Source: Macrostomum lignano (taxonomy: Eukaryota). Taken from it: a stretch of 64,000 nt of DNA. Of the stretch, positions 14,388-64,000 are shown in pieces. The stretch covers positions 26,928-90,927 of the forward strand of contig NIVC01003567.1 of NCBI GenBank assembly GCA_002269645.1. Reading direction: 5' to 3'. A program made the translations under genes and the position numbers. Under the pieces are notes generated by a model. That model saw only the letters and a program-made list of their open reading frames with translations. It was not told the origin of the DNA and did not search any database. Positions within the stretch are counted from its first letter, which is position 1; the number at the start of each line of letters is the position of its first letter.

Positions 14388-15250
14388 TGAAGATCTGGGA
14401 GGCTGGCCCAGCAACTGAGAATCTGGGAGGCTGGCCCAGCAACTGAGGATCTGGGAGGCTGGCCCAGCAACTGAGGATCTGGGAGGCTGGCCCAGCAACT
14501 GAGGATCTGGGAGGCTGGCCCAGCAACTGACACTCTGGGAGGCTGACCCAGCAACTGAGGATCTGGGAGGCTGGCCCAGCAACTGGGGATCTGGGAGGCT
14601 GGCCCAGCAACAGGGGATCTGGGAGGCTGGCCAGCAACTGAGGATCTGGGAGGCTGGCCCAGCAACTGAGGATCTGGGAGGCTGGCCCAGCAACTGAGGA
14701 TCTGGGAGGCTGGCCCAGCAACTGACACTCTGGGAGGCTGGCCCAGCAACTGACACTCTGGGAGGCTGGCCCAGCAACTGAGGATCTAGGAGGCTGGCCC
14801 AGCAACTGAGGATCTGGGAGGCTGGCCCAGCAACTGACACTCTGGGAGACTGGCCCAGCAACTGGGGATCTGGGAGGCTGGCCCAGCAACTGAGGATCTG
14901 GGAGGCTGGCCCAGCAACTGGGGGTCTGGGAGGCTGGACCACGCAACTGAGGATCTGGGAGGCTGGCCCAGCAACTGAGGATCTGGGAGGCTGGCCCAGC
15001 AACTGAGGATCTAGGAGGCTGGCCCAGCAACTGAGGATATGGGAGGCTGGCCCAGCAACTGAGGATCTGGGAGGCTGGCCCAGCAACTGAGGATCTGGGA
15101 GGCTGGCCCAGCAACTGAGGATCTGGGAGGCTGGCCCAGCAACTGAGGATCTGGGAGGCTGGCCCAGCAACTGAGGATCTGGGAGGCTGGCCCAGCAACT
15201 GGGGATCTGGGAGGCTGGCCCAGCAACTGAGGATCTGGGAGGCTGGCGGT
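14388..15250. repeat. Minisatellite, ~28-bp unit cagcaactgaggatctgggaggctggcc (copy A)
   Basis: Tandem copies; same family as 26240-27405. Confidence 0.97.
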
Positions 15251-15594: not shown

Positions 15595-18500
15595 TTAATT
15601 ACGGCGGCTTGGAGCGCAGTATTTCTCGTAGTACTTCTCCAGGTCAGTCTCTGAAAACGGGGAGGATGGGCATCGGGTTGCTTTGTTGACTGCGAGATAA
15701 AGAAAGGGAGAGATTGGGAAATGAAGATGAAGGAGGGAGGTGACTGGGGGATGAAGATGAAGGGAGGGAGGAGACTAGGAGATAAAGATGTAAATAGGGA
15801 AAGTGGGAGATGGAGAGACTGGGAGATGAAGCGAAGGCGGCTGAGGCATGAAAGAAGGGAAAGTGTGGGAGATAAAGGGAGACTGGGGGTTAGAGGAAGA
15901 GACTGGGAGATGAAGGGAGACAGGGAGGTGGAAGGAGAGACAGGGAGATGAAGGGAGACTGGGAGATGGAGGGAGAGACTGGTAGATGAAGGGAGATTGG
16001 GGAATAAAGGGAGACTAGGGGTTAAACGGAGAGACTAGGAGATAAAGAGAGACAGGGAGATAGAGGGAGAGACTGGGAGATGAAGGGGAGACTGGGAGAT
16101 GAAGGGAGACTTGAAGATGGAGAGAGAAACTGGGAAACGAAGAGATAGACTGGGAAATGAAGGGATAATAGGATGGGAGATGAAGGGAGACTGGGAGATG
16201 GAGAGAGAGACTGGGAAACGAAGAGATAGACTGGGAAATGAAGGGATAATAGGATGGGAGATGAAGGGAGACTGGGAGATAAAGGGAGACTAGGGGTTAA
16301 AGGGAGAGACTAGGAGATAAAGAGAGACTGGGAGATAGAGGGAGAGACTGGGAGATGAAGGGGAGACTGGGAGATGAAGGGGAGACTGGGAGATAAAGGG
16401 AGGGAGACTGAGATGAAGGGAAAGAGAAACAGAACGACGTAAACACAGAATGAGTCAGTGCCTCTGAACCAGGGGTACTCTCATGAGAGCACACCAACAG
16501 CCGCTACGCAAGCTCACCTTTGGCCTGACTCATGAGGTTCCACAGTCGCTCTTCATCAGGACTGTGTGGGAAAATGCACTTGACTCCGTATCTGCACTGC
16601 TTGGTTTTGGCGATATTCTGGCACAGGAAGAACTTCGTTTGCGGCCTGTTGGGGTTCGGCACGGGCGCCCTGGCGTCGAGGCCGCTGTTGCTGTAGACGA
16701 TGATGGGCTTCACCCAGGCGTGCTGCCGCTGCTGGCACTGGCTGGGCTTATTGGGGTCGCGCGGCGATCGGCACTTGAAGCAGACGGCTTTGAGCAGCTG
16801 CTGCTGTGGCTGCGGATTCGCTGCTGAAGGCGCTGAAGCCGCGGCAGCTGCTGACTGGGCGCCGCTGCTTCCAACAGTTCCAGTCGAGGAGGCTGCGGCA
16901 GCGGCTGAGTTCGATGAGGCCGGAACTGTCGAGGCAGCGGCTGTGGATTTGCGAAGCCTGCAGACAACAGAAACATTTTAGGAGATGGGGATTTAGCCTG
17001 CAACTGATTGTAAGTGGCTGGAAATTTCCGTGGTATTGAGACCGGGTTTCTTGGAATTAGTATTTCGATTTCTAGAAATTTGAATTCTGATTAAATTTCG
17101 GATTCATATTTTGAAAATTCGGATTGCGCTTCCTAAAAACCAAATTAGGATTCCTAAAATTCAGTTTGTGTTTCTTAGAAACGAAATTAGGATTCCCAAA
17201 ATTCGGATTGTGTTTCTTAGAAGCGTAATTAGGATTCCCAGAATTCGGGTTGCGTTTCTTAGAAACGAAATTTGGGTTTTAAGAATACAGATCAAGTTTC
17301 ATGAAATTCATACTGGGATTCTTAGAATTTAGACTTAATTTCTCGGATTGCGCTGCTTAGAATCGATATCGGGGATATCTTACACTTTTGATTCATAAAG
17401 ACTTAACATTGAGATTAATATTTTAAGAATTAAGACTCAAAAAGTGTTAATCAAAAACAGCACACAGCTCTCACCTGCGCACAGCGGCGTCCAGGACCAG
17501 CGGCCCACCCGCTCCAGATTCCACAGCTGGCATTCCACTTCGCCGTGCGCGTAGTCGCAGTCGGACCTGAGGCACTTGTCCTCCACGTACAGGCGGCAGT
17601 TGTAGTACTCCCTGACCGGCTTGCTGCCTGACCGCAGCTGCCGCACCTGGCACCAGTGAGAGGCGCCGGGCGCCCGGACCAGCAGGCGGGTCTCGGCGCA
17701 GGAGTGCCCGGTCGCTGGGTCGTACTTGAACCGGGTGCAGATCACGTCCAGCGGCGTGGAGCACTGGTCGCAGGCCAGAACCATGGAGTAGTCCGGGACC
17801 GACGGGAATTCTGGCGTGGATGCGGCGGCTTGGCCGGCCGTCCGATACTGAGGGAGACGCGGGGGGGGACCCCAAAATCTTTAAACAATCTCTCCCTGCA
17901 GAATGATGGAATAAAAAAACGATCAGAATCCAAATCTACTAAATCTCACCCCTTAGAATCCATCCAAATCTACTAAATCTCATCCCTCAGAATCCAAATC
18001 TACTAAATCTCACCCCTCAGAATCCAAATCTACTAAATCTCACCCTGGAGAATCCAAACCTACTAAATCTCACCCTGGAGAATCCAAACCTACTAAATCT
18101 CACCCTGGAGAATCCAAATCTACTAAATCTTAACCCTCAGAATCCAAATACACTAAATCTCACACTATACTTGTTGTGTATGAACTTTAAGTTCTATGGT
18201 TTATGGGTGAAGCCTTATTCATATTTTAAGTATAGCAGCCAGCTACTTCGCTGCTAAAATATACGCGCTGCAGGCATCTACATGTACATAACGCTGCTAT
18301 GATCTTTACATAACGCTGCTATGATCTTTACATAACGCTGCTATGATCTTTACATAACGCTGCTATGATCTTTACATAACGCTGCTATGATTTTTTACAG
18401 TTGCGAGAAAAAGTTAGTGAACCCTGACTGAATTGTCACAAAAATCGCAATAACTTCTTTTAGCCCAAGGAAAATATTCTTAGATTTTATTCAAATAAAT

Positions 18501-21500
18501 GATATTTATATTAGTAACTGATTTTGTATATTGTTAGCAAAAATATCGCATAGTTTGGACATTGTTGACTGAAAACGTAAAACTGCTGAAGAAAAAGTTA
18601 GTGAAGCCAAAAGTTTGTACTATAAACATGCTGATTGTAATCATTCAAACCATTGAAACCACAATGCATGATGCAATTGCAGACAATCGCGGCACGTTGC
18701 ACGCAAAATCTGTTGCACCATTGTAGTTTGAATGCAATCATACGCTTGTACAAAGCTATATAAAGCCTTAAAGGCAGGCTAGCTAACAGCAGTACTTTAT
18801 TCCAGCATGTATCGTGGCAAAGAGCTCCCAGAGCATTTGAAGCAACTTGTTGTATCAGCTCACAAAACTGGCCTTGGATACAAGAAAATTGCCAGCCAAC
18901 TTCAGCTCAGTGCTTCCACTGTTAGAGCTGTCATACACAAATGGCGGAGGCACAACACTGTGACTTCACTGCCTCGAAGTGGACGACCGGCCAAAATTTC
19001 TAAGCGCACAGCAAGGAGACTAGCTCAGACTGTTGACAGTGATCCAACTGTGACTGCTAGTCAACTGCAGCATCAGCTTGCTCAATGCGGAATAGAGGTT
19101 CACAAATCAACGGTGCAGAAGTCTTTGAACCGTCAAGGACGCCATGGACGAGTTGCTCGCAAGAAGCCTCTTCTGTCCAAAAAGCATCGCCAAGCTCGCC
19201 TAAAATTTGCTCAACAGCAGCTGCAGCAGCCGGACAGCTATTGGCAAAATGTCTTGTGGACAGATGAAACAAAAATTGAACTGTTTGGGCACATTTCGCA
19301 GCGATATGTGTGGCGCAAGCCAAATCAGGCATTTAAACAAAGTAATGTACTGCCAACTGTAAAACATGGAGGTGGCAGCATCATGCTATGGGGCTGCTGC
19401 GCTGCAAGTGGAACTGGAAACATTGTCCGAATTCATGGAATAATGAACTCAGTCATGTATCAGGAAATACTGGCTGCTAATGTCCGACCTAGCGTGCGAA
19501 AGCTGAAACTTGGGCGTAATTGGCTGATGCAGCAAGATAACGACCCAAAGCATACGAGCAAATCCACTCAGGCATGGTTTCAGAACAAAAATGTGAAGCT
19601 GATGGACTGGCCAAGTCAAAGCCCAGATCTGAACATTATTGAAAATCTTTGGTTCGATCTGAAGAAGGCTGTTCACGCACGCAGACCTCGGAATCTGGAC
19701 GAGTTGGAGAGGTTCTGCATTGAAGAATGGGAGAAGATTCCTGCAGAGCGGTGCAGTCGACTGATTGACAGTTACAGAAATCGATTGCGGGCCGTTATTG
19801 CTGCTAAGGGTGGAGTTACAAAGTATTAGCTGTTGGTATTTGAAACGGGTTCACAAACTTTTTCACCATCCGTTTTTTGTTTTCGGTCAATTGTGTCAAA
19901 ACTACGCGATATTTTTGCTAACAAAGTACAAAATTTAGTTACTAAATATAACTATTTTTTTGAATAAAATCTGAGAATATTTTCCTTGAGCTAAAAAAAG
20001 TTATTGCAATTTTTGTGACAATTCAGTCAGGGTTCACTAACTTTTTCTCGCAACTGTACGATCTCTTCCTAACTCGGCATCTTGCATTCGTCTTCGTTAC
20101 TACGAAAAGTACAACATGGCGACGAGGAAAATTTAATTCGCCGCGGGACGATACTGCAGTCACCAAATCTTCATACCGATGTCTTCCGGACTCGACTTCC
20201 GACTGGGGGAGATGCCGCTGTGCTACCCCGATGTCGAACAGTATTTCAAGCGCCTCGGTTTTTACATTAGCGCAACGGAAAAGAATGACCAGAGCAAAGC
20301 CGTTCTACTTGCTACTTGTGGAGATGCCGCATTTTCACTGATTGAGACACTTGTGCAGCCAGAAGACATTTTAAACGATACAAAGTGTACGTTCGATTTC
20401 ATCAAAGAAGCGGTACTGAGCCACTTGAAACCCAAGCGCCTTCTTCACTACGACAGACATCTGCTACATACCATGGTCCAAATACAGGGTGAGTCGGTGA
20501 CAAAGTTTTTGGAGAGACTGAAGACACAGGCCAACAAATGCGAATTCGGCAACCTGCGAGAAGAGTTAATTCTTTCGCAGTATATTTTCGGACTGGCTGA
20601 TAATTCTCTGAAGCAAAAATTACTAGTGAAGGAAAAACTGGATCTAGAGACTGCGGTTAAGGATAGTCTCTTATCGGAGTCCGTATCTCAAGCTACTGAT
20701 TCGAGCAAAACCGTCGCAGCAGTGCATAAAACCACTCACAAGAAGACCGGCAGCAACCACAAGTATCCAACGGTATCCAGGCCAATGCCAACAACGCCGA
20801 ATCATTCTAAGTCTAGCTGCCATTCCTGTGGTAACCCGGGTCATCTTAGAAATACCTGCAAGTTCCGTAATGCGACATGTCACAAGTGCGGAAAAACCGG
20901 GCACATTGCCAGAGCATGCAGGTCCAACATCGGTGGCAGCAAGAAAGTCACGTACGCGGAAGTTGAAGCAACCGACGCTGATCCACCTGATTCAGCTGTG
21001 TACTCGGTGATCAAGGCTACTCCATGCGACGAACTCTGGAAAATAGTCTGCACGATCGGTGATTCCACAGTCCATATGTGCGTCGACTCTGGTAGTCAGG
21101 TAACAATTTTGCCAGTAACCATCGTAGAGCAAGCCGGATTGCACATGGTTGACGCGGACATTCGATCACTCAAAGTTTTCGGGGGAGCTTCAGTTTCCGT
21201 ACGAGGCATGGCTAAGGACGTCACGATTGAGCTGAGAAACGGCAAAACGGCATGCGGAGACATATATGTCGGGGACCCATCTAGTCAAGCCATTTTGGGA
21301 AAAAATTTTATTCGTGCCTTCAACCTATTGACGGTAGACGAATTTCTGTGCCATCCAGTGCAGTGTGATAAAAATTTAAGATTCCAGGCCAGCTTTCGCC
21401 TGAAGGACGGGGCCTCTACCGATGGAATGTGCTTTCCTGCCAGATCCCTTCCGTTCTCAATTAAAACTTTGGTTGAACTGGAGCTGAAAAGACTGGAAAG

Positions 21501-24500
21501 TGCAGGTATCATCTACCCAGTTCACTCGCCTAAGGTATCGTGCCCTATTGTTCCTGTGTTGAAACCAGAAGGATCAAAGAGACCCATTAGACTGTGTGGA
21601 GACTATTCAGTCACTCTCAACAGACTGATAGACCGAGATCGATATCGACTGCCAACTTTGAAATAAATCCTTCAAAAGATCCCAAATTCGAAAGTGTATT
21701 CAGTGCTCGACCTCGAAGACGCATTCTTGCAGATTTCCCTAACGCCAGAAAGTCAAGATCTTACGTGTATTTCCACCCACGTAGGACATTTTGCCTTCCG
21801 CAAGTTACAATTTGGGATATCGGCAGCACCACTGATATTTCAGGAAGTTATGGATATTTTGCTCAAAGGAATACCAGGCACTGCTTCTTATCAGGACGAC
21901 ATCATTCTAGGCACTGAAACAGTGGAGCAGCATCGACAGATCCTGGTGCAAGTCAAGGAAAAACTGAAAAAGCATGGATTCAAGATCAATGAGCGTAAGA
22001 CTCAGGAGTGCAAGAAAGAAGTCACATTTCTGGGATTTCTCCTCCGAGATGGGAAACTTTTGCCTGATCCTGCAAGAGTGGAAGCTCTATCCAACTTGTC
22101 AGAGCCAAAAGACCGGGATCAATTGAGAAGTGCTATATGCACCTTAAGACACTACGGGATTTTTTGTCCGAACTTCTCTATGATCGCCAAGCCGCTCTAT
22201 TACCTCCTAAAGAAAGGGGTTCAGTGGAAATGGACTGTCGTTCACTCAAGTGCGTTCTCCCAACTGAAAGCTGCTGTAACGGAAGGTCGAATCGTTTCTT
22301 ATGATATAAAAAGGCCGTTGTTTCTAACCTGCGACGCTTCTCAGAGTGGAGTCGGATTTGTGCTGTCCCACGACACGAACCAAAAAGAAGTTGTATGGCT
22401 GGGAAGCAGAGTTTTGACCAAGGCTGAGGCCAACTACGCCAACATTGAGCGGGAGGCTCTTGCAATTATCGAGGGTGTAAAATATTTTCATCAATTTCTG
22501 GCAGGCCGTCATTTTACAATCATCTCTGATCACAGACCTTTGCAGTACATCTTCTCTACAACGAAAGTTCCTGACCGAGTTTCTGCGAGACTCCAGAGAT
22601 GGGCATTGCTGCTCAGATCCTATGACTACACTGTCACTTACTCAAAAGGAGACACCATGCTCGCAGCAGATACTCTGTCCAGAATTCCTTCAACAAACGC
22701 TTCTACTTCGTTTTCAAATTTTGATGTCAATCTGCTGGAGGTAAACTCTCTCGTAGAATTTTCTTCTTCTGGGACAATTCTTCGGCGTGTCGCCAACACC
22801 AGAGACCCTGAAATTGATACTATCAAGAAGTTTGTTACTCAAGGTTGGCCAAGCTACATTTCTAAACAGCTGCTTCCGTACACCAAATCCAAGGCGGAAT
22901 ACTCCATTCAAAACGGGATTCTGTTCAAAGGGATCCGAATCGTGCCTCCAAAGTCCATGCGCAGAGAAATTCTTCAAATTCTTCACGAGAATCATCCGGG
23001 CATTGTGCGCATGATCAGACTAGCTCGAGAGTACTTCTGGTGGCCTTACATTGACGCCCAGATCAATAGCTTCGTTCAAAGGTGTCCTTCCTGCCAACTA
23101 AATTCGAGAAAGCGAACAAATGCAAATCTGCATTCATGGGAAGATGCAAAGTTCTTCTTCGAACGTGTTCATCTGGACATAGCATATTTCAAGGAGAAAC
23201 ACTTCTTGGTTCTCATCGACTCCTTCTCTCGGTGGATTGATGTACATCAGCTGTCAAATATCACAGCCAACTCTCTTATTCCAGCATGCAGACGAACATT
23301 TAAGTACATGGGACTTCCAACGTGCATTGTGACTGACAATGGAACCAATTTTCGATCAAAAGAGTTCGCAGAATTTCTCAAGAAGAATCTAATTAACCAT
23401 GTCTTAACACCACCTGGTCATCACCAGTCAAATGGGATTGTGGAAAGAGCTATCCAAGAGTTGAAAGTGACTCTGAAGCAGAACAGTAATGACATAGGTT
23501 CCGAATGTGAGAAGGTGTTGATATCATTCTGCCTTTCGAAGAACACTACACCGAATTCCGAAGGAGCGATTCCTGCTGCACAACTGTTTATGCAACGCCC
23601 AAGAACGCGCCTCACTGCAACCTTTACAGAATGGGACAAACCGCTAACTACCCCAATTCCTGTCTACATCAACGTAGAAGGAAAGTCAGACAAGGTCCCA
23701 GAAGAAATCCAAGGACTTCATGGATCAAATACCTACTTGGACAGCAAAGGACGGGTTGTCCATGCATCTGATGCAACGCCAAGGACTACAGAGAACTCAC
23801 AAGAGATTACCTCGCCTGGACCTGCCAATGTTGGCAGCAGCAATGATAAGGAAATCGAAACTATGACTCCTGCTGAAGTGGAGACAACCAGCGATCAAAG
23901 TCCCGAGTACCAAATTTCTCGTCGAAGTCAGAGGCTCCGAAAAGCCCCTGATCGGCTGACCTATTCCTGATTTATTTGATCGTTAGACAAAATAGAAAAC
24001 AGTCATTTATTTCTCTCCAGGTTAATTGCTAAAATGTGGGGGTGTTGTGTATGAACTTTAAGTTCTATGGTTTATGGGTGAAGCCTTATTCATATTTTAA
24101 GTATAGCAGCCAGCTACTTCGCTGCTAAAATATACGCGCTGCAGGCATCTACGATCTCTTCCTAACTCGGCATCTTGCATTCGTCTTCGTTACTACGAAA
24201 AGTACAACAATACTCCAAAACAACAAAATCTCATTCTAGAAGACACCCAACCCACAAAATCTCAGTCTAGAAGACACCCAACCCACAAAATCTCAGCCTA
24301 AAGACACCCAACCCACAAAATCTCATTCTAGAAGACACCCAACCCACAAAATCTCAGTCTAGAAGACACCCAACCCACAAAATCTCAGTCTAGAAGACAC
24401 CCAACTCACAAAATCTCAGTCTAGAAGACACCCAACTCACAAAATCTCAGTCTAGAAGACACCCAATCCACAAAATCTGTCTAGAAGACACCCAACTCAC

Positions 24501-27500
24501 AAAATCTCAGTCTAGAAGACACCCAACCCAAAAAATCTCAGTCTAGAAGACACCCAACTCACAAAATCTCAGTCTAGAAGACACCCAACCCACAAAATAT
24601 CAGTCTAGATGACACCCAACCCACAAAATCTCAGTCTAGAAGACACCCAACCCACAAAATCTATCTAGAAGACACCCAACCCACAAAATCTGTCTAGAAG
24701 ACACCCAACTCACAAAATCTCAGTCTAGAAGACACCCAACTCACAAAATCTCAGTCTAGAAGACACCCAACTCACAAAATCTCAGTCTAGAAGACACCCA
24801 ACCCACAAAATCTCAGTCTAGAAGACACCCAACTCACAAAATCTCAGTCTAGAAGACACGCAACCCACAAAATCTCAAGCCACAATTCACAGTCTCACCG
24901 TTGGGAAGGCGGCATTTATAGGGAATCCCCCGCTGGCGGAAGTCTTTACCTCCATTAACGGCGAGATGATCGAGGCGGCCGGAGCAGATGGCGCGAACTT
25001 CTGACCGATTGGCCTGAGCAGAGGCGCCGGTTCGTCGAAATTGTCCAATGAGTTCAAGTAGCTTTGCGACTTCTTAGCGCCCTGCTGCTGCTGCTGCTGC
25101 TGCTGGGCGGCCGCGGGCAGGGCAGCGGCGAAGCCGGGGGCGGAGTCCGGTGTGAGAAGAGACTGGCTGGCCTGCGGATCGGAAAGGTCAAATGAAGGTC
25201 AAATTGCGCTAATAATCAAATGAAAATCAGCCTTGCGCTTTTACTGCCAGTTGGTGCAGGTTAAGCAAGCCTGATGGTGGTTAGTACGACAAGAATGTCG
25301 CAGTGAGTAAGGTAGTTACACTAGAATCTTAAGTGTCAGGGAACAGAGATGGAAATCTCCAACTGTCTACTAGCAGTAGGCTGTACCCAGCTTAGCATAG
25401 CCGGCAAAATCGCTCACCGACTGAGAGGCGGATGCCGACGCGGCAGCAGCAGCCGAGTAGAGCGACGCCGTCTGCGGCTGCGGCGGCTCGTCGTTGAAGT
25501 CGTCCAAAGAGTTCAAATAGTCGCCCCCGCTGCGGCCCACCATCGGCTGGCTGTGGTCCGGGCTGAGCAAGGAAGCCGGCCGGGCAGCGGGCAGGCCGGG
25601 ATCGTAGCCGCCATAGTACACCTGCTGCTGCTCCTCCGCCTCGTCTCCTGGTGGAATCAAAGCTACGGCAGGCTGCAGACTCTGCCTGGCCTGATCAATA
25701 AAACGGGCCACGTTGAACTGGTCATCGCACTGCAGATTCCACAGGTGAAGTTCTTCGTGCCCGTGCGGGAACGGGCACTCCAAGCCGAGCTGACAGCGCT
25801 GCTTGCGGGCGAAGTGCCGGCAGAAATTGGTGAACTCCTGCCTGAAGTAGTCGGGCGGCGACCGGATAAGCTTCCAACCTTCGGAGGCTTTCTCGCGCTG
25901 ACAGACGAACAGGCAGTCCAGCTGGCAGGCGTGGCCGGAGCTGTGGTTGTCCAACATGCAGTAGGCGAACCCGTTCTGCCCGAGCAGCTCGGCCACGCAG
26001 TCCAGACAGCCCAGGCGGTACTGGTGCGTGCTGTCTAGTGGGAACTCCAGCTGATCTGCGTCCGCCTCCGCCTCGTTGCCATAGTCTTTTGAGTCCTTAG
26101 CAACGCTGTACATGGTATCGTAGCTGGCGGTGTCGCTGTAACCATAGAGACCGGATGAACCGCCGAAGGAGGAAGCCTGTATAGGGATTAAACCGATTTG
26201 ATGAACAGCACGACCGGCGTTCTTGGGATTTAAGAGGGTGGCCCAGCAACTGGGGATCTGGGAGGCTGGCCCAGCAACTGACACTCTGGAAGGCTGGCCC
26301 AGCAACTGGGGATCTGGGAGGCTGGCCCAGCAACTGGGGATCTGGGAGGCTGGCCCAGCAACTGAGGATCCGGGAGGCTGGCCCAGCAACTGAGGATCTG
26401 GGAGGCTGGCCCAGCAACTGGGGATCTGGGAGGCTGGCCCAGCAACTGAGGATCTGGGAGGCTGGCAGCCCAGCAACTGACACTCTGGGAGGCTGGCCAA
26501 GCAACTGAGGATCTGGGAGGCTGGCCCAGCAACTGAGAATCTGGGAGGCTGGCCAAGCAACTGAGAATCTGGGAGGCTGGCCCAGCAACTGAGAATCTGG
26601 GAGGCTGGCCCAGCAACTGAGAATCTGGGAGGCTGGCCAAGCAACTGAGGATCTGGGAGGCTGGCCAGGCAACTGAGAATCTGGGAGGCTGGCCCAGCAA
26701 CTGAGGATCTGGGAGGCTGGCCCATCAACTGAGGATCTGGGAGGCTGGCCCATCAACTGAGGATCTGGGAGGCTGGTGGCCCAGCAACTGAGGATCTGGG
26801 AGGCTGGCCAGGCAACTGAGGATCTGGGAGGCTGGCCCAGCAACTGGAGATCTGGGAGGCTGGCCAAGCAACTGAGGATCTGGGAGGCTGGCCCATCAAC
26901 TGAGGATCTGGGAGGCTGGTGGCCCAGCAACTGAGGATCTGGGAGGCTGGCCAGGCAACTGAGGATCTGGGAGGCTGGCCCAGCAACTGGAGATCTGGGA
27001 GGCTGGCCAAGCAACTGAGGATCTGGGAGGCTGGCCCAGCAACTGGGGATCTGGGAGGCTGGCCAGGCAACTGAGGATCTGGGAGGCTGGCCCAGCAACT
27101 GAGGATCTGGGAGGCTGTCCCAGCAACTGAGAATCTGGGAGGCTGGCCCAGCAACTGAGGATCTGGGAGGCTGGCCCAGCAACTGGGGATCTGGGAGGCT
27201 GGTGGCCCAGCAACTGAGGATCTGGGAGGCTGGTGGCCCAGCAACTGAGGATCTGGGAGGCTGGCCCAGCAGCTGGGGATCTGGGAGGCTGGCCAAGCAA
27301 CTGAGGACCTGGGAGGCTGGCCCAGCAGCTGGGGATCTGGGAGGCTGGCCAGGCAACTGAGGATCTGGGAGGCTGGCCCAGCAGCTGGGGATCTGGGAGG
27401 CTGGCGGTGGTGACCCAAGAGAGTGGAATGTATGGATCGAAGCTCCAGACTCACAGGCTGTGCAGAACTGTCTCCGAGTCCAAAGTTCGAAATTCGAGCG

Positions 27501-29971
27501 GCGGCCGCCTGGGCTGGCGGTGGCTTTTTCTGCGGACTTGCCGCCGCCGTGTTGACTTTCAGCTGGTTGACAATGTACTGGATGGTCAATGACCCACGAG
27601 CCTGCAGATTCCACAATTCGCACTCCACATCCGAATGCGGATCCTCGCACTCGTCGCCATGGAAACACTCGCCGAACGTGGCCTGATTTGAGCACAGCTC
27701 GTACACGTAGCTGTAGCCGAGATCGACTTCTTTCGGCATTCGAACCACATACCAGGTGGTTTCTTTTAAGAGGCGGGCAATGAGGCAATCGCGGGAGCAA
27801 GTCTCGCAGGGGGCATCTGCTCGATTGCCATTGTCATCCACGCAGTTGGCGCAGGCCAGGTCGAATGCGAACTTGCTGAGTTCGGCAGCTGAATTGTCCT
27901 GCTGCTGGCAGGAATAATAGCTGGAAGAAGTGGCAGATACTGAGGCAGAGGCGGCAATCGGAGCCGAAGAAGACATCGAGCCGGAAGCATATGCTGGCGC
28001 ATTCGCCGATACGGAAGCAGAAAACTGGGCGCTGTTGCTGCTGTTGCTTTTGCTGGCCTTTGCGTACTGTTGTGTAATGGGTGGTGGCGGCGGTGGTGGA
28101 GGAGGCGGATGCAGCTCAGCAGCGGACTGACTGGTTGGTGGAGCATCAACCGGAGACCTGGTGACCTGGTTGGCGGTCCAGCTGAACAGAGCTCCGATTG
28201 GGGGCAAATGAGGCTGCTGCTGAACAACTTTCGGTGGGATTTCGGCAGTCATTAAAGGCTTGACTGGTGCTGGCTCGGCAGGCTTTCGCTGCTGTTTAGG
28301 CGTTTCGCCATTGTGTTTAGCGATGAACCCGGCAACCGTGAATGCGTCCATATAGTTTTTGTCGAAATTCCACAGCTCTGTTTCAATTTCGGAATGCCCG
28401 AAGGTGCAGTTCTCGCGGCAAGGATAGCCCCCCTTGGATTTGTAGCATCGATAATAATTACCGGTATAACCCGGACGAGCTACCCGTGGTCGAATCAGTT
28501 TCCACAGAGTTTCACCAGGCTCCTTGGCAAACAGCTGGTTTCGTGGACAATTGTGCTTCTGTGGCTTGGTCGCAATTTCATAATCATATATCCGACCATC
28601 GGCAGGCTTCGAACAGTCGGAGCACGCCAAGCAGAGATCCCACTTGGCTAGGAAGGGAAAATCGCCATCCTTGATCAGTTTCAGTGGCTCGGCTGAAGAA
28701 GACTGGCCAGCGGAACCTACGCCGCCGCCGCCACTTTTTTTCCCACCAGCTGGCACAGTCTGCCACGAAGTCTCAGCCAGAGCTTGACGAAACTGCTCAG
28801 TTTCCTGCTCGTGAATTCTTGTGTCTTTCAATTTAACCGATTCTTTCTCAGCAGCAGTTGCCTGCTTGGCAATATTAGCCTTCTCAGACTGTTTTGTCAC
28901 AGCGTTCTGCTCAGACGAATCGCTCGATTTTTGCTTGGAAGACTTCTTCTTTTTCTTATTGCCACTTTGATCCGCTTGCTGCTGCTGCTGCTTTTGGTTT
29001 TCTTTGGCTGCGGCAGCTGCTGCTTTCTTTTCGTTCTCTTTTGCTTGCCGCTCTCTTTCTAATCTCTGCTTCTCCTCTTGCTTTTGTTTTTCCTGCTTTT
29101 GCCTCTCTTTCTCTTGTCTTTGCCGCTCTTCCTGCCGCTCTTTTTCTTGCTTCTGCTTCTCAAGACGCTGCTTCTCCTGCCTCTCCATTTCTAGACGTCT
29201 TGCTTTTTCTTGTTTCTCTTTTTCAAGACGCTGCCTTTCCTTTTCTTGCCTTTCCTTTTCCAGACGCTGCTGCTCCAAACGTTGTTTCTCTTTTTCTTTC
29301 GCTTGTATCTGCTTTTTATAAGCCTCGTCTTTGTCTTTCTTTTGCTGCTGCAATTTAAGTTCCTCGGCAGTGTTGTCTTCCCTAGAAACCGAAGCCTGCT
29401 TGTGCCGGCCATTTGGAGCGGGCACGGCGACTCCGGTGGCTACTCGAACTCCGCCAGTTCCACTCTCAGTTGTTACCCGGACTTTGCGGAGCTCCGAGTC
29501 CGACCAATCCGACAGGGGGTCGTCAATCACGGAATCTTCAACGCTATCGTCATCGGAGCTGTCGCCGCAGCCACCGTAGTGCTCAACAAGATCCTGTGAG
29601 GCGGACTTTGCCGCTTCATGTCTTGAATCTTTGGCGTCATCTTCCTGGCCTGCACGCGACGAAGCCAAGTCCCCCGACTGGTCCGGGCGTCTCTGCTGCT
29701 GCTTACTGAACTCTGCGGCAACATTCACCTCGGGTATGGAGGAGGAGGAGGTGGCCGAATCAGACCGCGCCTCGTGTCGATTGACGCTGCTGTTATAAGG
29801 CTGCGAGGCTGGCGGCGGCGGCGGGCGATATTCGGACAGGAATTCGAGCTCGTTGTCGCTATCCGCCGGTTCCAGAGCTGGCACGGACTCGCCAGTTTGG
29901 CTGCCCATCCAGCCGCTGAGGATTGGAATTAATAAATAGCGGAATAGCATTCTGCACAGGCAGAGCAGCAT
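15595..29971 (-). CDS. ZC3H7/HELZ2-type multi-CCCH zinc-finger protein, ~1450 aa, five modules plus an N-terminal coiled coil; exons complement(27455-29971 [or start 29908], 25418-26176, 24899-25171, 17475-17847, 16518-16957, 15595-15650)
   Basis: Five repeats of LxCxxC...HxC...WxxIR...C-x7-8-C-x3-5-C-x3-H(S/G)xxExxLWN. Splice phases agree except that a 1-nt frameshift near 17500 is needed. Start codon uncertain (acceptor-like site at ~29916). Confidence 0.8.
15705..16425. repeat. Degenerate purine-rich repeat (gggagactgggagatgaa)
   Basis: Fills the last intron of the zinc-finger gene. Confidence 0.85.
17925..18165. repeat. Minisatellite aatccaaatctactaaatctcaccctcag
   Basis: Tandem copies immediately left of the LTR element. 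Confidence 0.9.
18287..18397. repeat. Five-copy 22-bp minisatellite cataacgctgctatgatcttta at the Tc1 left junction
   Basis: Absent from the otherwise identical 3' LTR. Confidence 0.95.
18398..20056 (+). mobile_element. Tc1-family DNA transposon, IR/DR type, 1659 bp, nested in the 5' LTR
   Basis: Ends CAGTTG...CAACTG flanked by TA. About 210-bp imperfect TIRs, each with outer and inner direct repeats gaaaaagtt(a/t)gtgaa(c/g)cc (18407, 18591, 19847, 20030). AATAAA in the right TIR. Confidence 0.97.
18807..19829 (+). CDS. Tc1-like transposase, 340 aa, intact DD34E
   Basis: Paired-like HTH with GRPAK motif; WTDETK, QQDNDPKH and SPDLNIIENLW; 34 residues between the second D and E. Confidence 0.97.
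   Translation: MYRGKELPEHLKQLVVSAHKTGLGYKKIASQLQLSASTVRAVIHKWRRHNTVTSLPRSGRPAKISKRTARRLAQTVDSDPTVTASQLQHQLAQCGIEVHKSTVQKSLNRQGRHGRVARKKPLLSKKHRQARLKFAQQQLQQPDSYWQNVLWTDETKIELFGHISQRYVWRKPNQAFKQSNVLPTVKHGGGSIMLWGCCAASGTGNIVRIHGIMNSVMYQEILAANVRPSVRKLKLGRNWLMQQDNDPKHTSKSTQAWFQNKNVKLMDWPSQSPDLNIIENLWFDLKKAVHARRPRNLDELERFCIEEWEKIPAERCSRLIDSYRNRLRAVIAAKGGVTKY
20179..23970 (+). pseudogene. Single-frame gag-pol of the Gypsy element, interrupted by one in-frame TAA (21664-21666) in RT
   Basis: Two CCHC knuckles, protease VDSGS, RT YQDD, RNase H (CDAS, NIEREALAI, SDHRPL), integrase HHCC plus DDE. Both ORF-track ORFs are in the same frame and read PTLK*ILQK across the stop. Confidence 0.93.
24215..24880. 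repeat. Minisatellite, ~31-bp unit cagtctagaagacacccaacccacaaaatct
   Basis: Tandem copies right of the LTR element. Confidence 0.96.
26240..27405. repeat. Minisatellite cagcaactgaggatctgggaggctggcc (copy B), intron 1 of the zinc-finger gene
   Basis: Tandem copies; same family as 14388-15250. Confidence 0.97.
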
Positions 29972-34920: not shown

Positions 34921-37214
34921 AAAAGCCTAGGGGGGCCCAGACTTTCCGAAAAAACGGAAAACTAAATTAAAAAAAGGTTTTTTTAACTTATTTAAGAAAT
35001 AAAAAGTAAAACTAAAATAGCTAAAATAAATTAAAGCTATACAGTTTAGTAAAAAATTAGTAGTTTTGACTTATTAGCTTTAAAATTAATAAAATTTTGC
35101 AAGCAGTTAATATAAGTCGTAATATGTATTTTCTATTTCGGCGTATTTCGTGTGCGTTAAAAAATCCGTTGGCGTAGTACCGGGTAAATACGATCTTTAC
35201 CCTGTTGTATAGGTAGGCTCTCCAGTGAGATTTAAAAAAATTTTTTTTGAAAGTATGATTTTCAAACATGACAGAGGGCATCAACAGTATTCCAAACTGG
35301 CTTCATTTATGAAAATTAATTGAATAATAAAAAAGTTATGAAGATTTTAGTGACGAGTTTTGTATTCAATTCAATAGGAGAAAATAGTAAAAATACATTT
35401 AAAAAGCAGAACTTTTGTTGCGAAAATTAAAATTTTTGTGTTCAAATGTATTTAAATCAATGATTTTTAGTAAAAAATGTATTGGCTTTGGTGTATTTGA
35501 AAGATAATTTTGTTTTCTATGTAATTAAATTAGAATCAATCTAATTCTAGGGCCTAATATAACTTAAAGTAGCAATTTTTGTCAATTTCTGCTAATGTAT
35601 AGCATAAAAAGATACATTTTTTCCTGGGAAAATTTTTAACTTTCCAGTTCCATTCTGTAGTTATGTGGTTTCCATGCCATAATTTTTCTTATTTAGGTTA
35701 AAAACAGCTGGTACTATATTGCAAGTAAAATATTATTGAATAGGCCCAGGCTACCCAGCTCTAATGTTGTCTATAAAAGTTTATTTTAGCATTTTTTTAT
35801 TTTTTAATACAGGTTCTAGTGGGGAAAAATAGGCCTACAGGACCACATTTATAAAGGTACCAATTGTTTCAGTGACAGACATTTCGGTAACAAATAGTCG
35901 TTTCGGTGACAAGTTGCTTTTGTGATAGACACATTATTTTTGATTAAAAATTAAAAATTTCATGAGTATTGACATTTTAATAGTAAGAGGTGCTTCATAA
36001 TATTAGCTTGTAGTTATTTTGTTAAGATTTATGTTTTGTATTATATTTAAAAAATTTTATCAAAGGATTCATATATTTAAGAAAAGAAATCAAACTAATT
36101 ATATTGTTTTCTTCTTGTGCAGATAGGGATTGCAATCCCGGGATCCCAAATCCCAGGAATGTAGACAGGTTTTGGCCTGACAGGATCCTGGGATTGGAAA
36201 CTTTTATGATAAAGTTGGTGATATCCAGGAAATCAAAATGTTTGTACATGTATTTTAAATACATTGCACAAGTAATATTCACGCGTCGTGATCATGAGTT
36301 GTAACATGACTCTCGATTCTCAAATTGTGACATGATATAATACAAATTATACAATACACAATACATGCAAGTCTCAAACTTGTGTTGTGTTTATGTATTC
36401 GACTACTTGTGTTACTTGTGTTATGTACATAAAAAGCATTGAAAAATGAATCATTGACGTTTGCTGGGAGTTCAACGCATTTACTGAAATTAGCCTGCAT
36501 ATACATGTACTTTTATAGGCTTTGGAAGGAAACAAAAGCATGCCTAACTGCCTTTGGGCATTGGACCTTGAGCCAAAGGCAATTTTTAAAACAAACTAGA
36601 GGTCGGACAAGCAGAAAATTTTGGTTAGGAGTGAAATTTTGGGAAATTTTCAAAGTCAGGCGTGATTCAAAGTCGGCCGAGTTGGCCGATCCGGCTGACC
36701 AATTTGGCGGCCAACCAAGGAAGTTGCAAAAATGCCCACCCCAAAAAATACCAAAGTAGTAGTACTAAGTAGCTGACGAGGCATTTTGATCTAATAAGAC
36801 AGTCATAGTTACTTCTGCCGTTTACCCAAAGTTGCGTTAATTTTGCATTAGTTTTTTTACATGTAAGTCGCATTTTTGACCAAAAACTACGTCGCATTTT
36901 TGTTAAAACTAAGTTGCATGGCCGACCAAATTTTGGAGGTTGCGCATGTATGATTACAAGCCTAAACTAAAGACAAAGTTGGTATACAATGTGCTATTGC
37001 TAAAGTGCTTATAATTTTGCCATTAGAATCAATAATGAATATGTCTGCCAAATAGACTATGAAAAATAAATTGTATTTTTACCTTTCAATGGCATATCAC
37101 ATGCATTTTGGTAGAAACTTTAAACTGATATCTTTTTTGGTGATATAATCAACAAATGGTTTTTCGCAAGGTATCATGACAGCATTGGAAAGCTAACCTT
37201 GTATTAGAGAAGAA

Positions 37215-56668: not shown

Positions 56669-59600
56669 ATGGAAGTGGAGGTGGCTCATCCCTCCCAGCC
56701 TAACGCTAGCAGATTTGACGAGCCAGCAGCCGCCGCCATGTCGCTGCCGCAGCCGCCGGCGCCGCAGCAGCGGTCGGGCAACACGCGCAGCGGCCACACC
56801 AGCCTGCAGCAAAAGCGTCCAGCGCCCGTCGATGGCTCCAAAGTTCTGCGTAACGACGAAGTTTACCGCCAGCTGTTCGAGGCGCAGGTGCAGCTCACGG
56901 ATCAGCTGGCCGGCACCCGGTGGTGGCGCGAGAACAAGCCGGCCGTGAAGCAGGTGAAGTCCTCCCGGGACCTCAGCCTGCCGGTGGTCCGCAACGCCGC
57001 CCCAGCCACCAGCCGCGGCATGCTGGCCGGCCGTCAGGCCGATTGGACGCGCGCCTTGGAGAACGACGGCCGCACGGAGAACCCGGTTGTGGCCAGGCAG
57101 ACGGCGGAGTGGCTGGACCTGGTGTCGGCCGAGACCGAGTCCGGCCAGCACGCCACCGAGGTGGCCGACCTGCCCGATCAGGTGAGCTGAAACTTTCAAG
57201 CTGGCTGTAGGACACCGAAAACTTGAGCACCATCATGGATACGGAAGCAAAAGCCCCGGGCCGAACCCACTGAAATCGATAGTTTGTCGGGCCACTCGGC
57301 TAAAGAAAGGCCATAAAGACCAACAGCACTTGGCGTGACTCAAGACGCTAAGCAGTTGAATGGGAGTTTTAAATAAGCATTTTAATCTCGCCGAAGAGTC
57401 GTAATGCAGATCATTGAGTATTGCAAGTACTCTCGTGCATGTAGACAGTCGAGATTGGTGTTTCTGTCCGATCGGATGTCCGATGTCCGTGTGACTCTAC
57501 TATAAATTTTTTGTTTCATTCTATAGCCTTAAGTTGGTAGCCTATGGTCGTAGTCTAGAGGGGTTGTAGCCGAGTGTTTAGAGTGTCTGACTTAAACAAC
57601 TGAAAGGTCGAAGGTTCGATTCTCGACCCACTTGGAACAATTTGTGTCGTTGAGCAAGACACTTAACTCTGCATTGCATCAGTTCAGTTGTAATATGGGT
57701 GCCAGCATTAGCTGGGGGTAAGTGAGGGTGTGCATGTGTGGTGACTTCCAGGTCCTTCAACTGAACAGCCGTACGCATCCTTCAGATGCGCTGCGTAATA
57801 GCTGCGGCTGAGCTGTCGGTTGCACGTCTGCACATTAGGGCAGGTGTACTCAATCTCAAATTAGGGCAGGTTCACCCGCTCTGCTCTGAGGGATGTCGGA
57901 GAATTCATAATCGGTCTTCTTCAAACACCAACATCCCAGGTCCGACCGTCAAAACTGCGCTCCGACGTGATCGACCGGATCAAAGAGAAGCGACGCGAGC
58001 GACACAACCTCACACTGGAGGAGATGCACCAGGAGCTCTATCAGGTCGGCGTCTCCTTTGAGCCGCTGATTGTCCAGCGTTGCCAGAACCTACACGAGAC
58101 GCTGGCCAAGCTCGAGGAGGAGCTGGACCGTCGGCTGAGCCCGCTGGCGACCAACGAGTCACTGATGGCGCTGGACCAGCACCAGCTGCTCGGCCTGTGG
58201 CAGGGCGTCGCGGAGGTCTTCGCCGATAGACGCAACGCCATCGGCAGCCTCGACGAAGACCTGCTGGGTGAGCGGTGCCGGGTTTCAGAACTCATATCAT
58301 CTGCAGATTTTTCTACAAATGTCATCCAAACATCTCAGAACTTCCCATATCCTGGATGATTTATTTTGTTAAATGTACAATTTTATTGGAAGATTCGAGT
58401 CCCCACTTCTCCCCCGTGTAGAGTGTGGTGTTTCGGGAAATAAGTTCGCAATGAGCTGCACGTCTTTCCTGGAAATCTTTCATCTTATTTACATTTAGAT
58501 CGGCTGCTTAATTTCTAAGAAAACGCACTCGAAAGGCTTAATTTCATTAAAGTCATTAATTCTGGATGTTCTGTGTCTTGGAAATCTCATGCATCGCATA
58601 CTCATCGAAATAAGTGCATTCTGAAACCTCAATTTCCTGGGAAATATTTCGCGCGCGTTTTGAATGATTTTCAAGCCTCAAACCCCGCCCCCAGCCCTGG
58701 AGTCCGACCGGGTCACCGAGATCCGCCGGGTGTTCCACTCCTACAGCGAGGTCCTGGAACGCGTCAGCCACCTGGCGCCAGCCGAGCTGCACCGGATCGT
58801 GGACGACGAGGCTGTGCAGATGAACCAGACCCTGCTGGGCAACCAGCGCAGCTTCGCGGACCTCAACGCTCGATTGGTCATGTCCGAGCTGGACAGAGAG
58901 CGCCGGATGCGCGCCCAGTGGCAGGACAAAATTACCGAGTGGCGCGCCGGACACGTGGAGGTCGCCGTGGCCGGATTTCATCAGTTCGTTCAGAGCCCGC
59001 AGGTAAGATTCAATTAGCTCCTATTGGTGCCTTATCTTGCCGATCAAATGACGATCAATGCCGAGCTAGCAATTTTTAGAATCGTGATTACAAGTGCATG
59101 TGTTTTTTTTCTATTTTTTCAAGCCTTTGATGTGCCACCACAATCCACCTCGAATGCTTTGATATGCCGCCACGAACATCTCCAATCCTTTTATATGCCG
59201 CCACGAACATCTCAAATCCTTTTATATGCCGCCATGAACGCCTCAAATCTTTTGATGTGCCGCCTCGATCCACCTCAAATCATTTGATATTTCGCCTCGA
59301 TCCACCTCGAATCCTTTGATGTGCCGTCTCGATCCACCTCGAATCCTTTGGTGTGCCGCCTCGATCCACCTCGAATCCTTTTGTGTGCCGCCTCGATCCA
59401 CCTCGAATCCTTTGATGTGCCGCCTCGATCCACCTCGAATACTTTGATGTGCCGCCTCGATCCACCTCGAATGCTTTGGTGTGCCGCCTCGATCCACCTC
59501 GAATACTTTGATGTGCCGCCTCGATCCACCTCGAATACTTTGATGTGCCGCCTCGATCCACCTCGAATCCTTTGGTGTGCCGCCTCGATCCACCTCGAAT

Positions 59601-62600: not shown

Positions 62601-64000
62601 TTCTAATAAAATGCATTTACTTCTACTTTCTTATGGGCATACGAGTGCGCACGAATTCCTAAATTTTTTTGCTGCGCCAAAATCTTCTATACGACGTAGT
62701 TTTAAAACAGACAGTCCAAGCCGTAAATTCCTGGATAATTTAGCAAACTTAGTGCGTAAACAACTTGTTTTCGATGCAGTCTGTTATGATGTACTTTAGC
62801 GAGCACCACTGAGAATGTACATGGCTGAGGGAGGCAATAAAATGGGGATGGGGACGCTCCCGGGTACGGAGAGAGGGAGGAGAGGCTGCGTGCGGTCAGA
62901 GGGTTTGAACTGGGGGTAAGAGGAGATCGATAAATGAACCAATAGGAAGTCACGAGGAGGAAAGAGAGGATTGCATTGTACATAGCGTAGTCAAAGATGT
63001 GCTAAATAAAATCAATTATAAAATTTACTTCGCGCGGAAATTTAACCTAAAAACTCCAATTAGACGCCCAATCGAAAGTAGCTTAGCATGGTTCATTTAG
63101 TCCAGCTATTAATCGTTTTACAACACTTAAATTTTACTTCGTATCCTGAGGGGTTGTTGCCTGAGGGGTTGTAGCCTGAGGGGTTGTAGCCTGAGGGTTG
63201 CTGCCTGAGGGGTTGTAGCCTGAGGGGTTGTAGCCTGAGGGGTTGCTGCCTGAGGGGTTGTAGCCTGAGGGGTTGTAGCCTGAGGGGTTGCTGCCTGAGG
63301 GGTTGTAGCCTGAGGGGTTGTAGCCTGAGGGTTGCTGCCTGAGGGGTTGTAGTGAGTGGTTGTAGCCTGAGGGGTTGTAGCCTGAGGGGTTGTAGCCTGA
63401 GGGGTTGTAGCCTGAGGGGTTGTAGCCTGAGGGGTTGTAGCCTGAGGGGTTGTAGCCTGAGGGGTTGTAGCCTGAGGGGTTGTAGCCTGAGGGGGTTGTA
63501 GCCTAGTTGTTAGGGCGTCGGACTCGCGACTTGAAGGTCGGGGGTTCGATTCCCGATCCCTTGTGTCCATTGTGTCCTTGAGCAAGACACTTAACTCTGC
63601 ATTGCTTCAGTTCACCCAGCTGTAAAATGGGTGCCAGCATTAGCTGGGGGTAATAAGGCGACCCCCGGTCCTACGCCAGAGACGACAGAGCCTCCTACAG
63701 CCGTACGCAGCCTTCAGATGCGCCGCGCAATAGCTGCGACTGAGCTGTCGGTTGCACATCTGGCCCAATTGGGGCAGGTGTAATCAGTGTAATCACAATA
63801 ATAATTTCTACTATTTTAGTTTCCAAACTATTTTAGCTCAGAGGCTCAATGTTTTGCATTGAAGTCAGTGTTCTGCATATTACGATCTATTATTCTTAAC
63901 CTTCTAAATCACCTGACCGGTTTTACTTCAGGTGGAGAAGAAGAAAGTCAAAGCGAATCTGAAGCCGGCGGAGCTCGCCAAGATCAAAGCCGCGCAGGAG
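56669..64000 (+). CDS. CCDC180: CCDC180/CFAP76-like coiled-coil protein, 3' end outside the window; exons 56669-57181, 57940-58267, 58695-59002, 59849-60026, 60532-60743, 60957-61376, 62199-62303, 63932->64000
   Basis: EVYRQLFEAQVQL, ENPVV and HRIVDDEAVQMNQTLLGNQRSFADL...W match the recalled CCDC180 N-terminal (DUF4455) sequence; all splice phases agree. Confidence 0.82.
57558..57870 (+). mobile_element. tRNA-headed CORE-type SINE, copy 1 (more diverged)
   Basis: A box tagccgagtg, B box ggttcgattct, core gtgtcgttgagcaagacacttaac...tgtaatatggg; colinear with copy 2. Confidence 0.82.
59120..59825. repeat. Intronic minisatellite, 32-bp unit gtgccgcctcgatccacctcgaatactttgat
   Basis: Tandem copies read directly. 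Confidence 0.96.
61540..62060. repeat. Intronic minisatellite, 23-bp unit cctcctgacacacagttgtggcg
   Basis: Tandem copies read directly. Confidence 0.96.
63145..63495. repeat. 15-bp minisatellite gaggggttgtagcct, identical to the 5' end of the adjacent SINE
   Basis: About 23 copies running directly into the SINE head. Confidence 0.96.
63490..63810 (+). mobile_element. tRNA-headed CORE-type SINE, copy 2
   Basis: A box tagcctagttg (63499), B box ggttcgattcc (63543), MIR-like core gtgtccttgagcaagacacttaac...cagtt...ctgtaaaatggg (63572-63631), structured 3' part, short repeat tail. Confidence 0.86.

Follow-up and report, generated by a model that had tools for sequence, protein, structure and literature searches.

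A 22-bp minisatellite between a target TA and a Tc1-like transposon in one LTR of a Macrostomum lignano retrotransposon

A stretch of 64,000 nucleotides from Macrostomum lignano (GenBank assembly GCA_002269645.1, contig NIVC01003567.1, positions 26,928 to 90,927 of the forward strand), referred to here as the window and numbered from its first letter, carries a Ty3/gypsy-type long terminal repeat (LTR) retrotransposon at 18172-24209. The 5' LTR of this element is interrupted by a 22-bp minisatellite and a Tc1-like transposon, in the order target TA, CATGTA, array, TA, Tc1, TA and remaining LTR, with no LTR or Tc1 base lost. The left junction reads GCATC-TA (18279-80)-CATGTA (18281-86)-array-CAGTTGCGAG, with Tc1 starting at 18398, and the right junction reads CTCGCAACTG (20056)-TA (20057-58)-CGATCT. 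The 3' LTR has the empty site, GCATC-TA-CGATCT, at 24145-24157. This arrangement of the two LTRs had been described in an earlier note made from the sequence alone, and all of the elements which it described are present.

The array was reported in that note as five 22-bp copies. Four of them are exact copies of CATAACGCTGCTATGATCTTTA (18287-18374), while the fifth (18375-18397) is a 23-nt variant that has a C>T change and an additional T. Tandem Repeats Finder places the repeat at 18285-18395, with a period of 22, 5.0 copies, 98% matches and a score of 215. Together with CATGTA, the array makes up an insert of 117 bp in the 5' LTR. The unit was found nowhere else in the window at up to three mismatches, and shuffled versions of the window gave 0 matches. 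It was also remarked that every copy is bounded by TA; this is true and nearly automatic, because the unit holds three TAs.

When the two parts of the 5' LTR (18172-18280 and 20059-20116) were joined in script, the resulting sequence was identical to the 3' LTR (24043-24209) at 167/167 positions, with 110/110 identity for the left part, so the near-identical LTR pair of the earlier note is in fact an identical one once the insert is removed. The sole differences between the two LTRs are the extra 117-bp segment and Tc1 with its one TA. Occurrence of the array in the other LTR of the same element was looked at, and the 3' LTR lacks it. Because it is missing from this otherwise identical twin, the array is younger than the integration of the retrotransposon, in agreement with the order of events proposed before. 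The time stamp given by the LTR pair is loose, because 0/167 differences bounds the divergence only below ~1.8%. Since the array exactly fills the gap between the target TA and the left end of Tc1, the economical reading links it to Tc1. Two other identities of the 117-bp insert were considered and rejected. A transposable element of the miniature inverted-repeat type (MITE) or other second element was rejected as no terminal inverted repeats could be read from the sequence, and an aberrant 22-bp target duplication was rejected because TA, and not the end of the 22-mer, flanks Tc1.

The retrotransposon has the structure of a Ty3/gypsy element (Table 1), with direct LTRs of 167 bp beginning in TG and ending in CA, a target duplication within the 4-6-bp range, a primer-binding-site-like motif, a purine tract, and the Pfam domain order protease, reverse transcriptase, RNase H and integrase in gag-pol. 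The best database match of its pol has 58% identity, and the nearest named source is Macrostomum lignano. Despite the identical LTRs, gag-pol contains a lone in-frame stop at 21664-21666, in the N-terminal part of the reverse transcriptase domain. Arrays at 17923-18163 and 24223-24877 border the element on its two sides; their units differ (30 bp and 31 bp) and have AAATCTCA in common. Array DNA was already there when the retrotransposon integrated, in it or at its border.

Table 1. Features of the interrupted retrotransposon, the array and the Tc1-like element (positions in the window)
Feature	Positions	Strand	Remarks
Left 5-bp target-site duplication, ATACT	18167..18171	+	Flank ends in ATACT before TGTTGTG
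5' LTR, left part	18172..18280	+	LTR positions 1-109; ends in target TA 18279-18280
TACATGTA	18279..18286	.	Target TA plus CATGTA; palindromic and footprint-like, as in joints with 2-nt overhangs (C. elegans Tc1)
22-bp minisatellite	18287..18397	+	Four exact CATAACGCTGCTATGATCTTTA units and a 23-nt variant ending in the TA that adjoins Tc1
Tc1/mariner element, IR/DR (Sleeping-Beauty-like)	18398..20056	+	1659 bp; ends CAGTTGCGAG...CTCGCAACTG
Intact transposase ORF, 340 aa	18807..19829	+	Pfam HTH_SB, HTH_Tnp_Tc3_2, DDE_3; D153, D244, E279
Right TA of Tc1 target-site duplication	20057..20058	.	
5' LTR, right part	20059..20116	+	LTR positions 110-167
Primer-binding-site-like TGGCGACGAGGA	20117..20128	+	TGG... 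start, directly 3' of 5' LTR; read from sequence
gag-pol, single reading frame	20179..23970	+	Zinc knuckle, aspartic protease, reverse transcriptase, RNase H, integrase
Polypurine-tract-like AAAATGTGGGGG	24031..24042	+	Directly 5' of 3' LTR; read from sequence
Intact 3' LTR	24043..24209	+	TG...CA, 167 bp; keeps the ancestral empty site
Ancestral 22-nt segment TACGATCTCTTCCTAACTCGGC	24150..24171	+	Matches array unit at 16/22
Right target-site duplication, ATACT	24210..24214	+	Same pentamer after 3' LTR

The Tc1-like element is bounded by terminal inverted repeats of ~210 bp (arms 18398-18608 and 19847-20056) with CAGT termini, and the outer 48 nt of its two ends are identical. Each arm has an outer and an inner direct repeat of the GAAAAAGTTAGTGAACCC type, at 18407, 18591, 19847 and 20030, and the TA target-site duplication lies at 18396-97 and 20057-58. 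The predicted transposase has a DD34E triad and a paired-like helix-turn-helix (HTH) domain. Judging from these features, the element is assigned to the Sleeping-Beauty-like subgroup with inverted repeats and direct repeats (IR/DR), and the copy looks functional and may be autonomous. The closest database relative of the transposase has 67% identity; a Macrostomum lignano match follows at 56%, with several named fish proteins above it. Searches with nhmmer recovered no further Tc1 relics or LTRs in the 64-kb window, leaving this as the one Tc1. Exact-protein look-ups with the Tc1 transposase and with gag gave no recorded match, and when metagenome, prokaryotic-genome and viral collections were scanned for exact DNA matches to the 22-mer and the Tc1 terminus, only chance 18-mers in bacterial metagenome-assembled genomes came up.

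The possible origin of the unit was explored by alignment. Written in TA phase (TATGATCTTTACATAACGCTGC), the unit matches the LTR segment TACGATCTCTTCCTAACTCGGC at 16/22 ungapped positions (73%). In the 5' LTR the same segment is 20057-20078, that is, the target TA and the next 20 nt, which now lie beyond Tc1. When all 22 rotations of the unit were compared with both strands of the 64 kb, only the target site, in its two LTR copies, reached 16/22 or more outside the array, and in the TA-anchored register 0 of ~6,229 other TA sites reach 16. The TA-anchored test was picked after the alignment had been seen, while the window-wide and shuffle tests were not. The match between unit and LTR has P = 0.008-0.01 per random 120-bp segment, and shuffled units compared with the 30 bp on either side of the TA gave P = 0.0023. 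These comparisons indicate that the unit is related to the target site and is not a faithful copy of it.

A different origin had been proposed in the earlier note, in which the unit is stitched from neighboring LTR words. Both words were read correctly (cgctgcta at 18249-18256, and tacgatct changed to tatgatct), and the stitching itself was not upheld. Finding a common 8-mer in 414 bp of surrounding sequence has P ~0.10, the word recurs at 7125, and mosaic coverage of the unit by local 5-, 6- and 7-mers gave P values of 0.02-0.3. The LTR carries a short inverted repeat, ATAGCAGC ... GCTGCTA (18232-18256), and because of it the array word GCTGCTA matches the LTR on both strands. Derivation of the unit from the Tc1 ends was also tried and rejected, as there is no similarity and the score lies at the null mean.

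An assembly artefact, or a chance resemblance with no link between array and Tc1, would be suspected from one observation in a very repeat-rich window. Four perfect copies and a variant with clean element boundaries are untypical of assembly error, and the precision of the junction and the match of unit to site are each improbable by chance; we therefore give this explanation hardly any credence. Two independent events are also unlikely, namely an LTR minisatellite formed by duplication and slippage after integration, and a later insertion of Tc1 at the TA on its right edge. The genome is extremely array-prone (34% of the window, 22.0 kb, is taken up by 45 array clusters), minisatellites in LTRs are known (Kelly 1994, as cited in PMC9659126), and the likeness of the unit to the adjacent LTR segment is what a degenerate edge repeat would show. 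On this explanation, however, Tc1 must strike the exact boundary TA, which is 1 of ~18 in the insert with thousands nearby, and the array must also start at the same ancestral TA with the footprint-like TACATGTA. Moreover, an array born by duplication is expected to be exact at first, yet 6/22 positions differ from the LTR segment against 0/167 between the LTRs.

The reading that we favor, tentatively and at slightly less than even confidence, is a Tc1-linked repair origin of the 117-bp insert followed by amplification. Apart from the post-integration age of the array and its confinement to the junction, all of what this reading holds is what we infer. A break that Tc1 induced at this TA would have yielded the seed as it was repaired. 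Tc1 would excise first, and the left flank with its CA overhang would begin end joining onto the right flank, producing TACA-TGTA, after which a low-fidelity, stop-and-go copy of the right flank would follow. Next to this filler Tc1 would then return, through copying from the sister chromatid or through local re-insertion at the adjacent TA, and replication slippage or unequal exchange would bring the copy number to five. In C. elegans, a Tc1 break that retains its two 2-nt CA overhangs gives TACATGTA (PMC4490562 supplement). Polymerase-theta end joining mends germ-line Tc1 breaks in that species, and 24% of its products contain inserts copied from sequence nearby (PMC4490562). Repair of transposon breaks as a seed of tandem repeats has already been proposed in a review (PMC9659126).

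Several observations weigh against a repair origin of this kind. Known templated inserts are identical to their template and accompany the loss of Tc1 (PMC4490562), while here Tc1 is present and intact beside the insert, and the insert is not identical to sequence near the break. Because Tc1 is retained, an extra step is needed, either restoration from the sister or re-insertion at 1 of ~18 TAs. The canonical footprint of Sleeping Beauty (SB)-type elements is TACAGTA or TACTGTA (PMC6943129), and TACATGTA fits the 2-nt footprint type instead; it can alternatively be parsed as a partial repeat, TACAT-G-TACAT. The earlier description of TACATGTA as a known Tc1 footprint is thus right for a C. elegans-type joint and does not extend to the canonical footprint of the SB-like subfamily. 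In addition, IR/DR elements suppress aberrant or single-ended reactions, which amount to 0.54% for Sleeping Beauty (PMC5224488). The six mismatches between unit and LTR segment are scattered and leave exact runs of no more than 5 nt, and the longest exact local word, an 8-mer in the left LTR part, is at chance level. These six differences are not the ordinary ageing of a copy, because the LTR pair has zero substitutions, and the reading does not account for the 27% by which the unit departs from its apparent source. Finally, the case is a single locus, with no second copy of Tc1, the LTR or the 22-mer in the window or the collections scanned, so the array may yet prove to travel with an element. 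The simple course, excision followed by templated end joining of the kind put forward in the earlier note, is not shown by this locus, because there is no faithful template, Tc1 is retained and TACATGTA is non-canonical here.

The presence of Tc1 and the lack of an exact local template would both be accounted for if the 117 bp had lain to the left of Tc1 at a donor site and had been carried in with it, by end bypass or transduction, after cleavage between an upstream TA and CA. The array would then have been born elsewhere and would be undated by this LTR. The composite 18281-20056 does begin with CA and has TA on both sides, and end bypass by elements with terminal inverted repeats is discussed in PMC8277862. 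The outer boundary of the composite, CATGTACATAAC..., is nevertheless unlike a Tc1 terminus or a transposase-binding repeat, the comparison of the unit with the Tc1 ends gives only the null mean, and the suppression of aberrant and single-ended reactions in IR/DR elements (0.54% for Sleeping Beauty; PMC5224488) applies here too. This explanation would also make a coincidence of the resemblance between unit and recipient target site (P ~0.002). Carriage from a donor site, and with it a birth of the array elsewhere, is therefore distinctly unlikely.

The scattered mismatches bear on a further explanation, since all six resemble evolutionary divergence rather than copying errors. The unit would be the homologous 22 nt of a related LTR subfamily in which this segment is tandemly repeated, brought in when a break at the TA was mended by ectopic repair or conversion, and ectopic repair of transposon breaks with paralogous copies has been proposed in review (PMC9659126). 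However, nhmmer detects no related LTR in the window, 73% identity is too low for homologous repair, and the right boundary is a clean Tc1 end with TA, which makes it a junction of transposition rather than the edge of a conversion tract. We consider import from a paralogue quite improbable.

A Tc1-linked repair origin had been extended in the earlier note to the many private arrays of this genome, as something that could explain them, and this extension was not sustained in the window. Among the 45 array units, 20 contain no TA, no other large array adjoins a Tc1 end, and no other sizeable array in the window has a footprint-like motif within 30 bp of its edge. The octamer TACATGTA occurs four times in the window, and the other three occurrences (36245, 36502 and 36858) are in an AT-rich stretch. 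The one at 36858 directly precedes a weak 24-bp repeat (2.4 copies, 36864-36919), an association that is not significant alone (P ~0.16, with 5.6% of the window lying near array edges and 3 octamers besides the one at Tc1). Not all of the arrays are private, because a 28-bp family occurs twice, at 14388-15247 and 26234-27405, in the same orientation and 11 kb apart, with units ~92% identical; there is no homology between the flanks of the two loci.

Other features of the array landscape were recorded alongside. A tRNA-derived repeat resembling a short interspersed nuclear element (SINE) is present in two copies that are ~77-85% identical, copy A at 57521-57852 and copy B at 63464-63786, with an Rfam tRNA match at 63492-63561. 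The 5' head of copy B is adjoined by a 15-bp array, GTAGCCTGAGGGGTT x24 (63141-63504), which is the amplified first ~15 nt of the SINE head, and copy A has only 3-4 degenerate units. The segment 30000-37500 is array-free over ~7.5 kb and has a low GC content of 31-34%, against array-rich surroundings of ~50% GC. On the minus strand, a 1072-aa ORF at 26753-29971 has no Pfam match and shares part of its length with the 28-bp array; it is probably no gene but an artefact of repeat sequence that lacks stops. Taken as a whole, the window suggests that any short duplication readily expands, with seeds coming from several sources.

Births of minisatellites are almost never caught together with the ancestral state. 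At this locus the twin LTR serves as an internal before-and-after control, and the Tc1 junction is a candidate cause. The structure is real, its mechanism is uncertain, and it gives no support for a genome-wide role. That Tc1-type break repair routinely writes low-fidelity, phase-locked copies of the flank beside a retained transposon, amplified at once, is very improbable; if true, cut-and-paste transposition would be a general minisatellite engine and a main source of the unrelated arrays in this genome. If the pattern recurs at other Tc1 junctions, seeding by break repair, which is now mostly argued in reviews, would become countable, and recurrence would also indicate an unusual repair outcome in which the transposon is kept and the filler comes from the opposite flank. 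As a single locus, the case is an instructive anecdote, and it leaves the array content of the window, one-third of its length, unexplained.

Transposon-associated minisatellites and the idea of seeding by breaks are already in the literature (PMC9659126), and flank-templated inserts at Tc1 breaks have been demonstrated by experiment (PMC4490562). What is unusual here is that Tc1 is retained, that the filler is, in TA phase, a relative of the opposite flank, and that the ancestral site is kept in the twin LTR. Among the closest known systems are the polymerase-theta joints at C. elegans Tc1 breaks (van Schendel et al. 2015, PMC4490562), which may share with this locus the TA break, the CA 3' overhangs and the type of the unprocessed joint, TACATGTA, and which also have extra DNA related to sequence adjacent to the break. 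The C. elegans inserts are short, identical to their template and not tandemly amplified, and Tc1 is lost, whereas the insert described here has 117 bp, 73% identity and a five-fold repeat, and Tc1 is kept.

With Sleeping Beauty and other IR/DR elements (PMC6943129, PMC5224488), the Tc1 copy shares a 340-aa transposase with D153/D244/E279, an SB-type HTH, TA duplication, the CAGT terminus, and inverted repeats of ~210 bp with two binding repeats per arm. It differs in that the Sleeping Beauty footprint, TACAGTA/TACTGTA, stems from 3-nt overhangs while TACATGTA is found here, and its protein is at most 67% identical to database relatives. The SINE head array at 63141-63504 is likewise a minisatellite exactly at the edge of a mobile element, with a unit related to the adjacent sequence. 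Its unit, however, repeats the element's own 5' head almost exactly, and no cut-and-paste break is involved; because both SINE copies carry some units, that repeat belongs to the element. Minisatellites derived from transposable elements, such as the LTR-borne minisatellites of mouse and the arrays within MITEs (PMC9659126), similarly combine an array with an element, and a seed from break repair followed by slippage has been proposed for them. Most of these amplify a piece of the element and are carried in all of its copies, whereas the present unit lies outside Tc1, between the element and its target duplication, and the twin LTR is without it.

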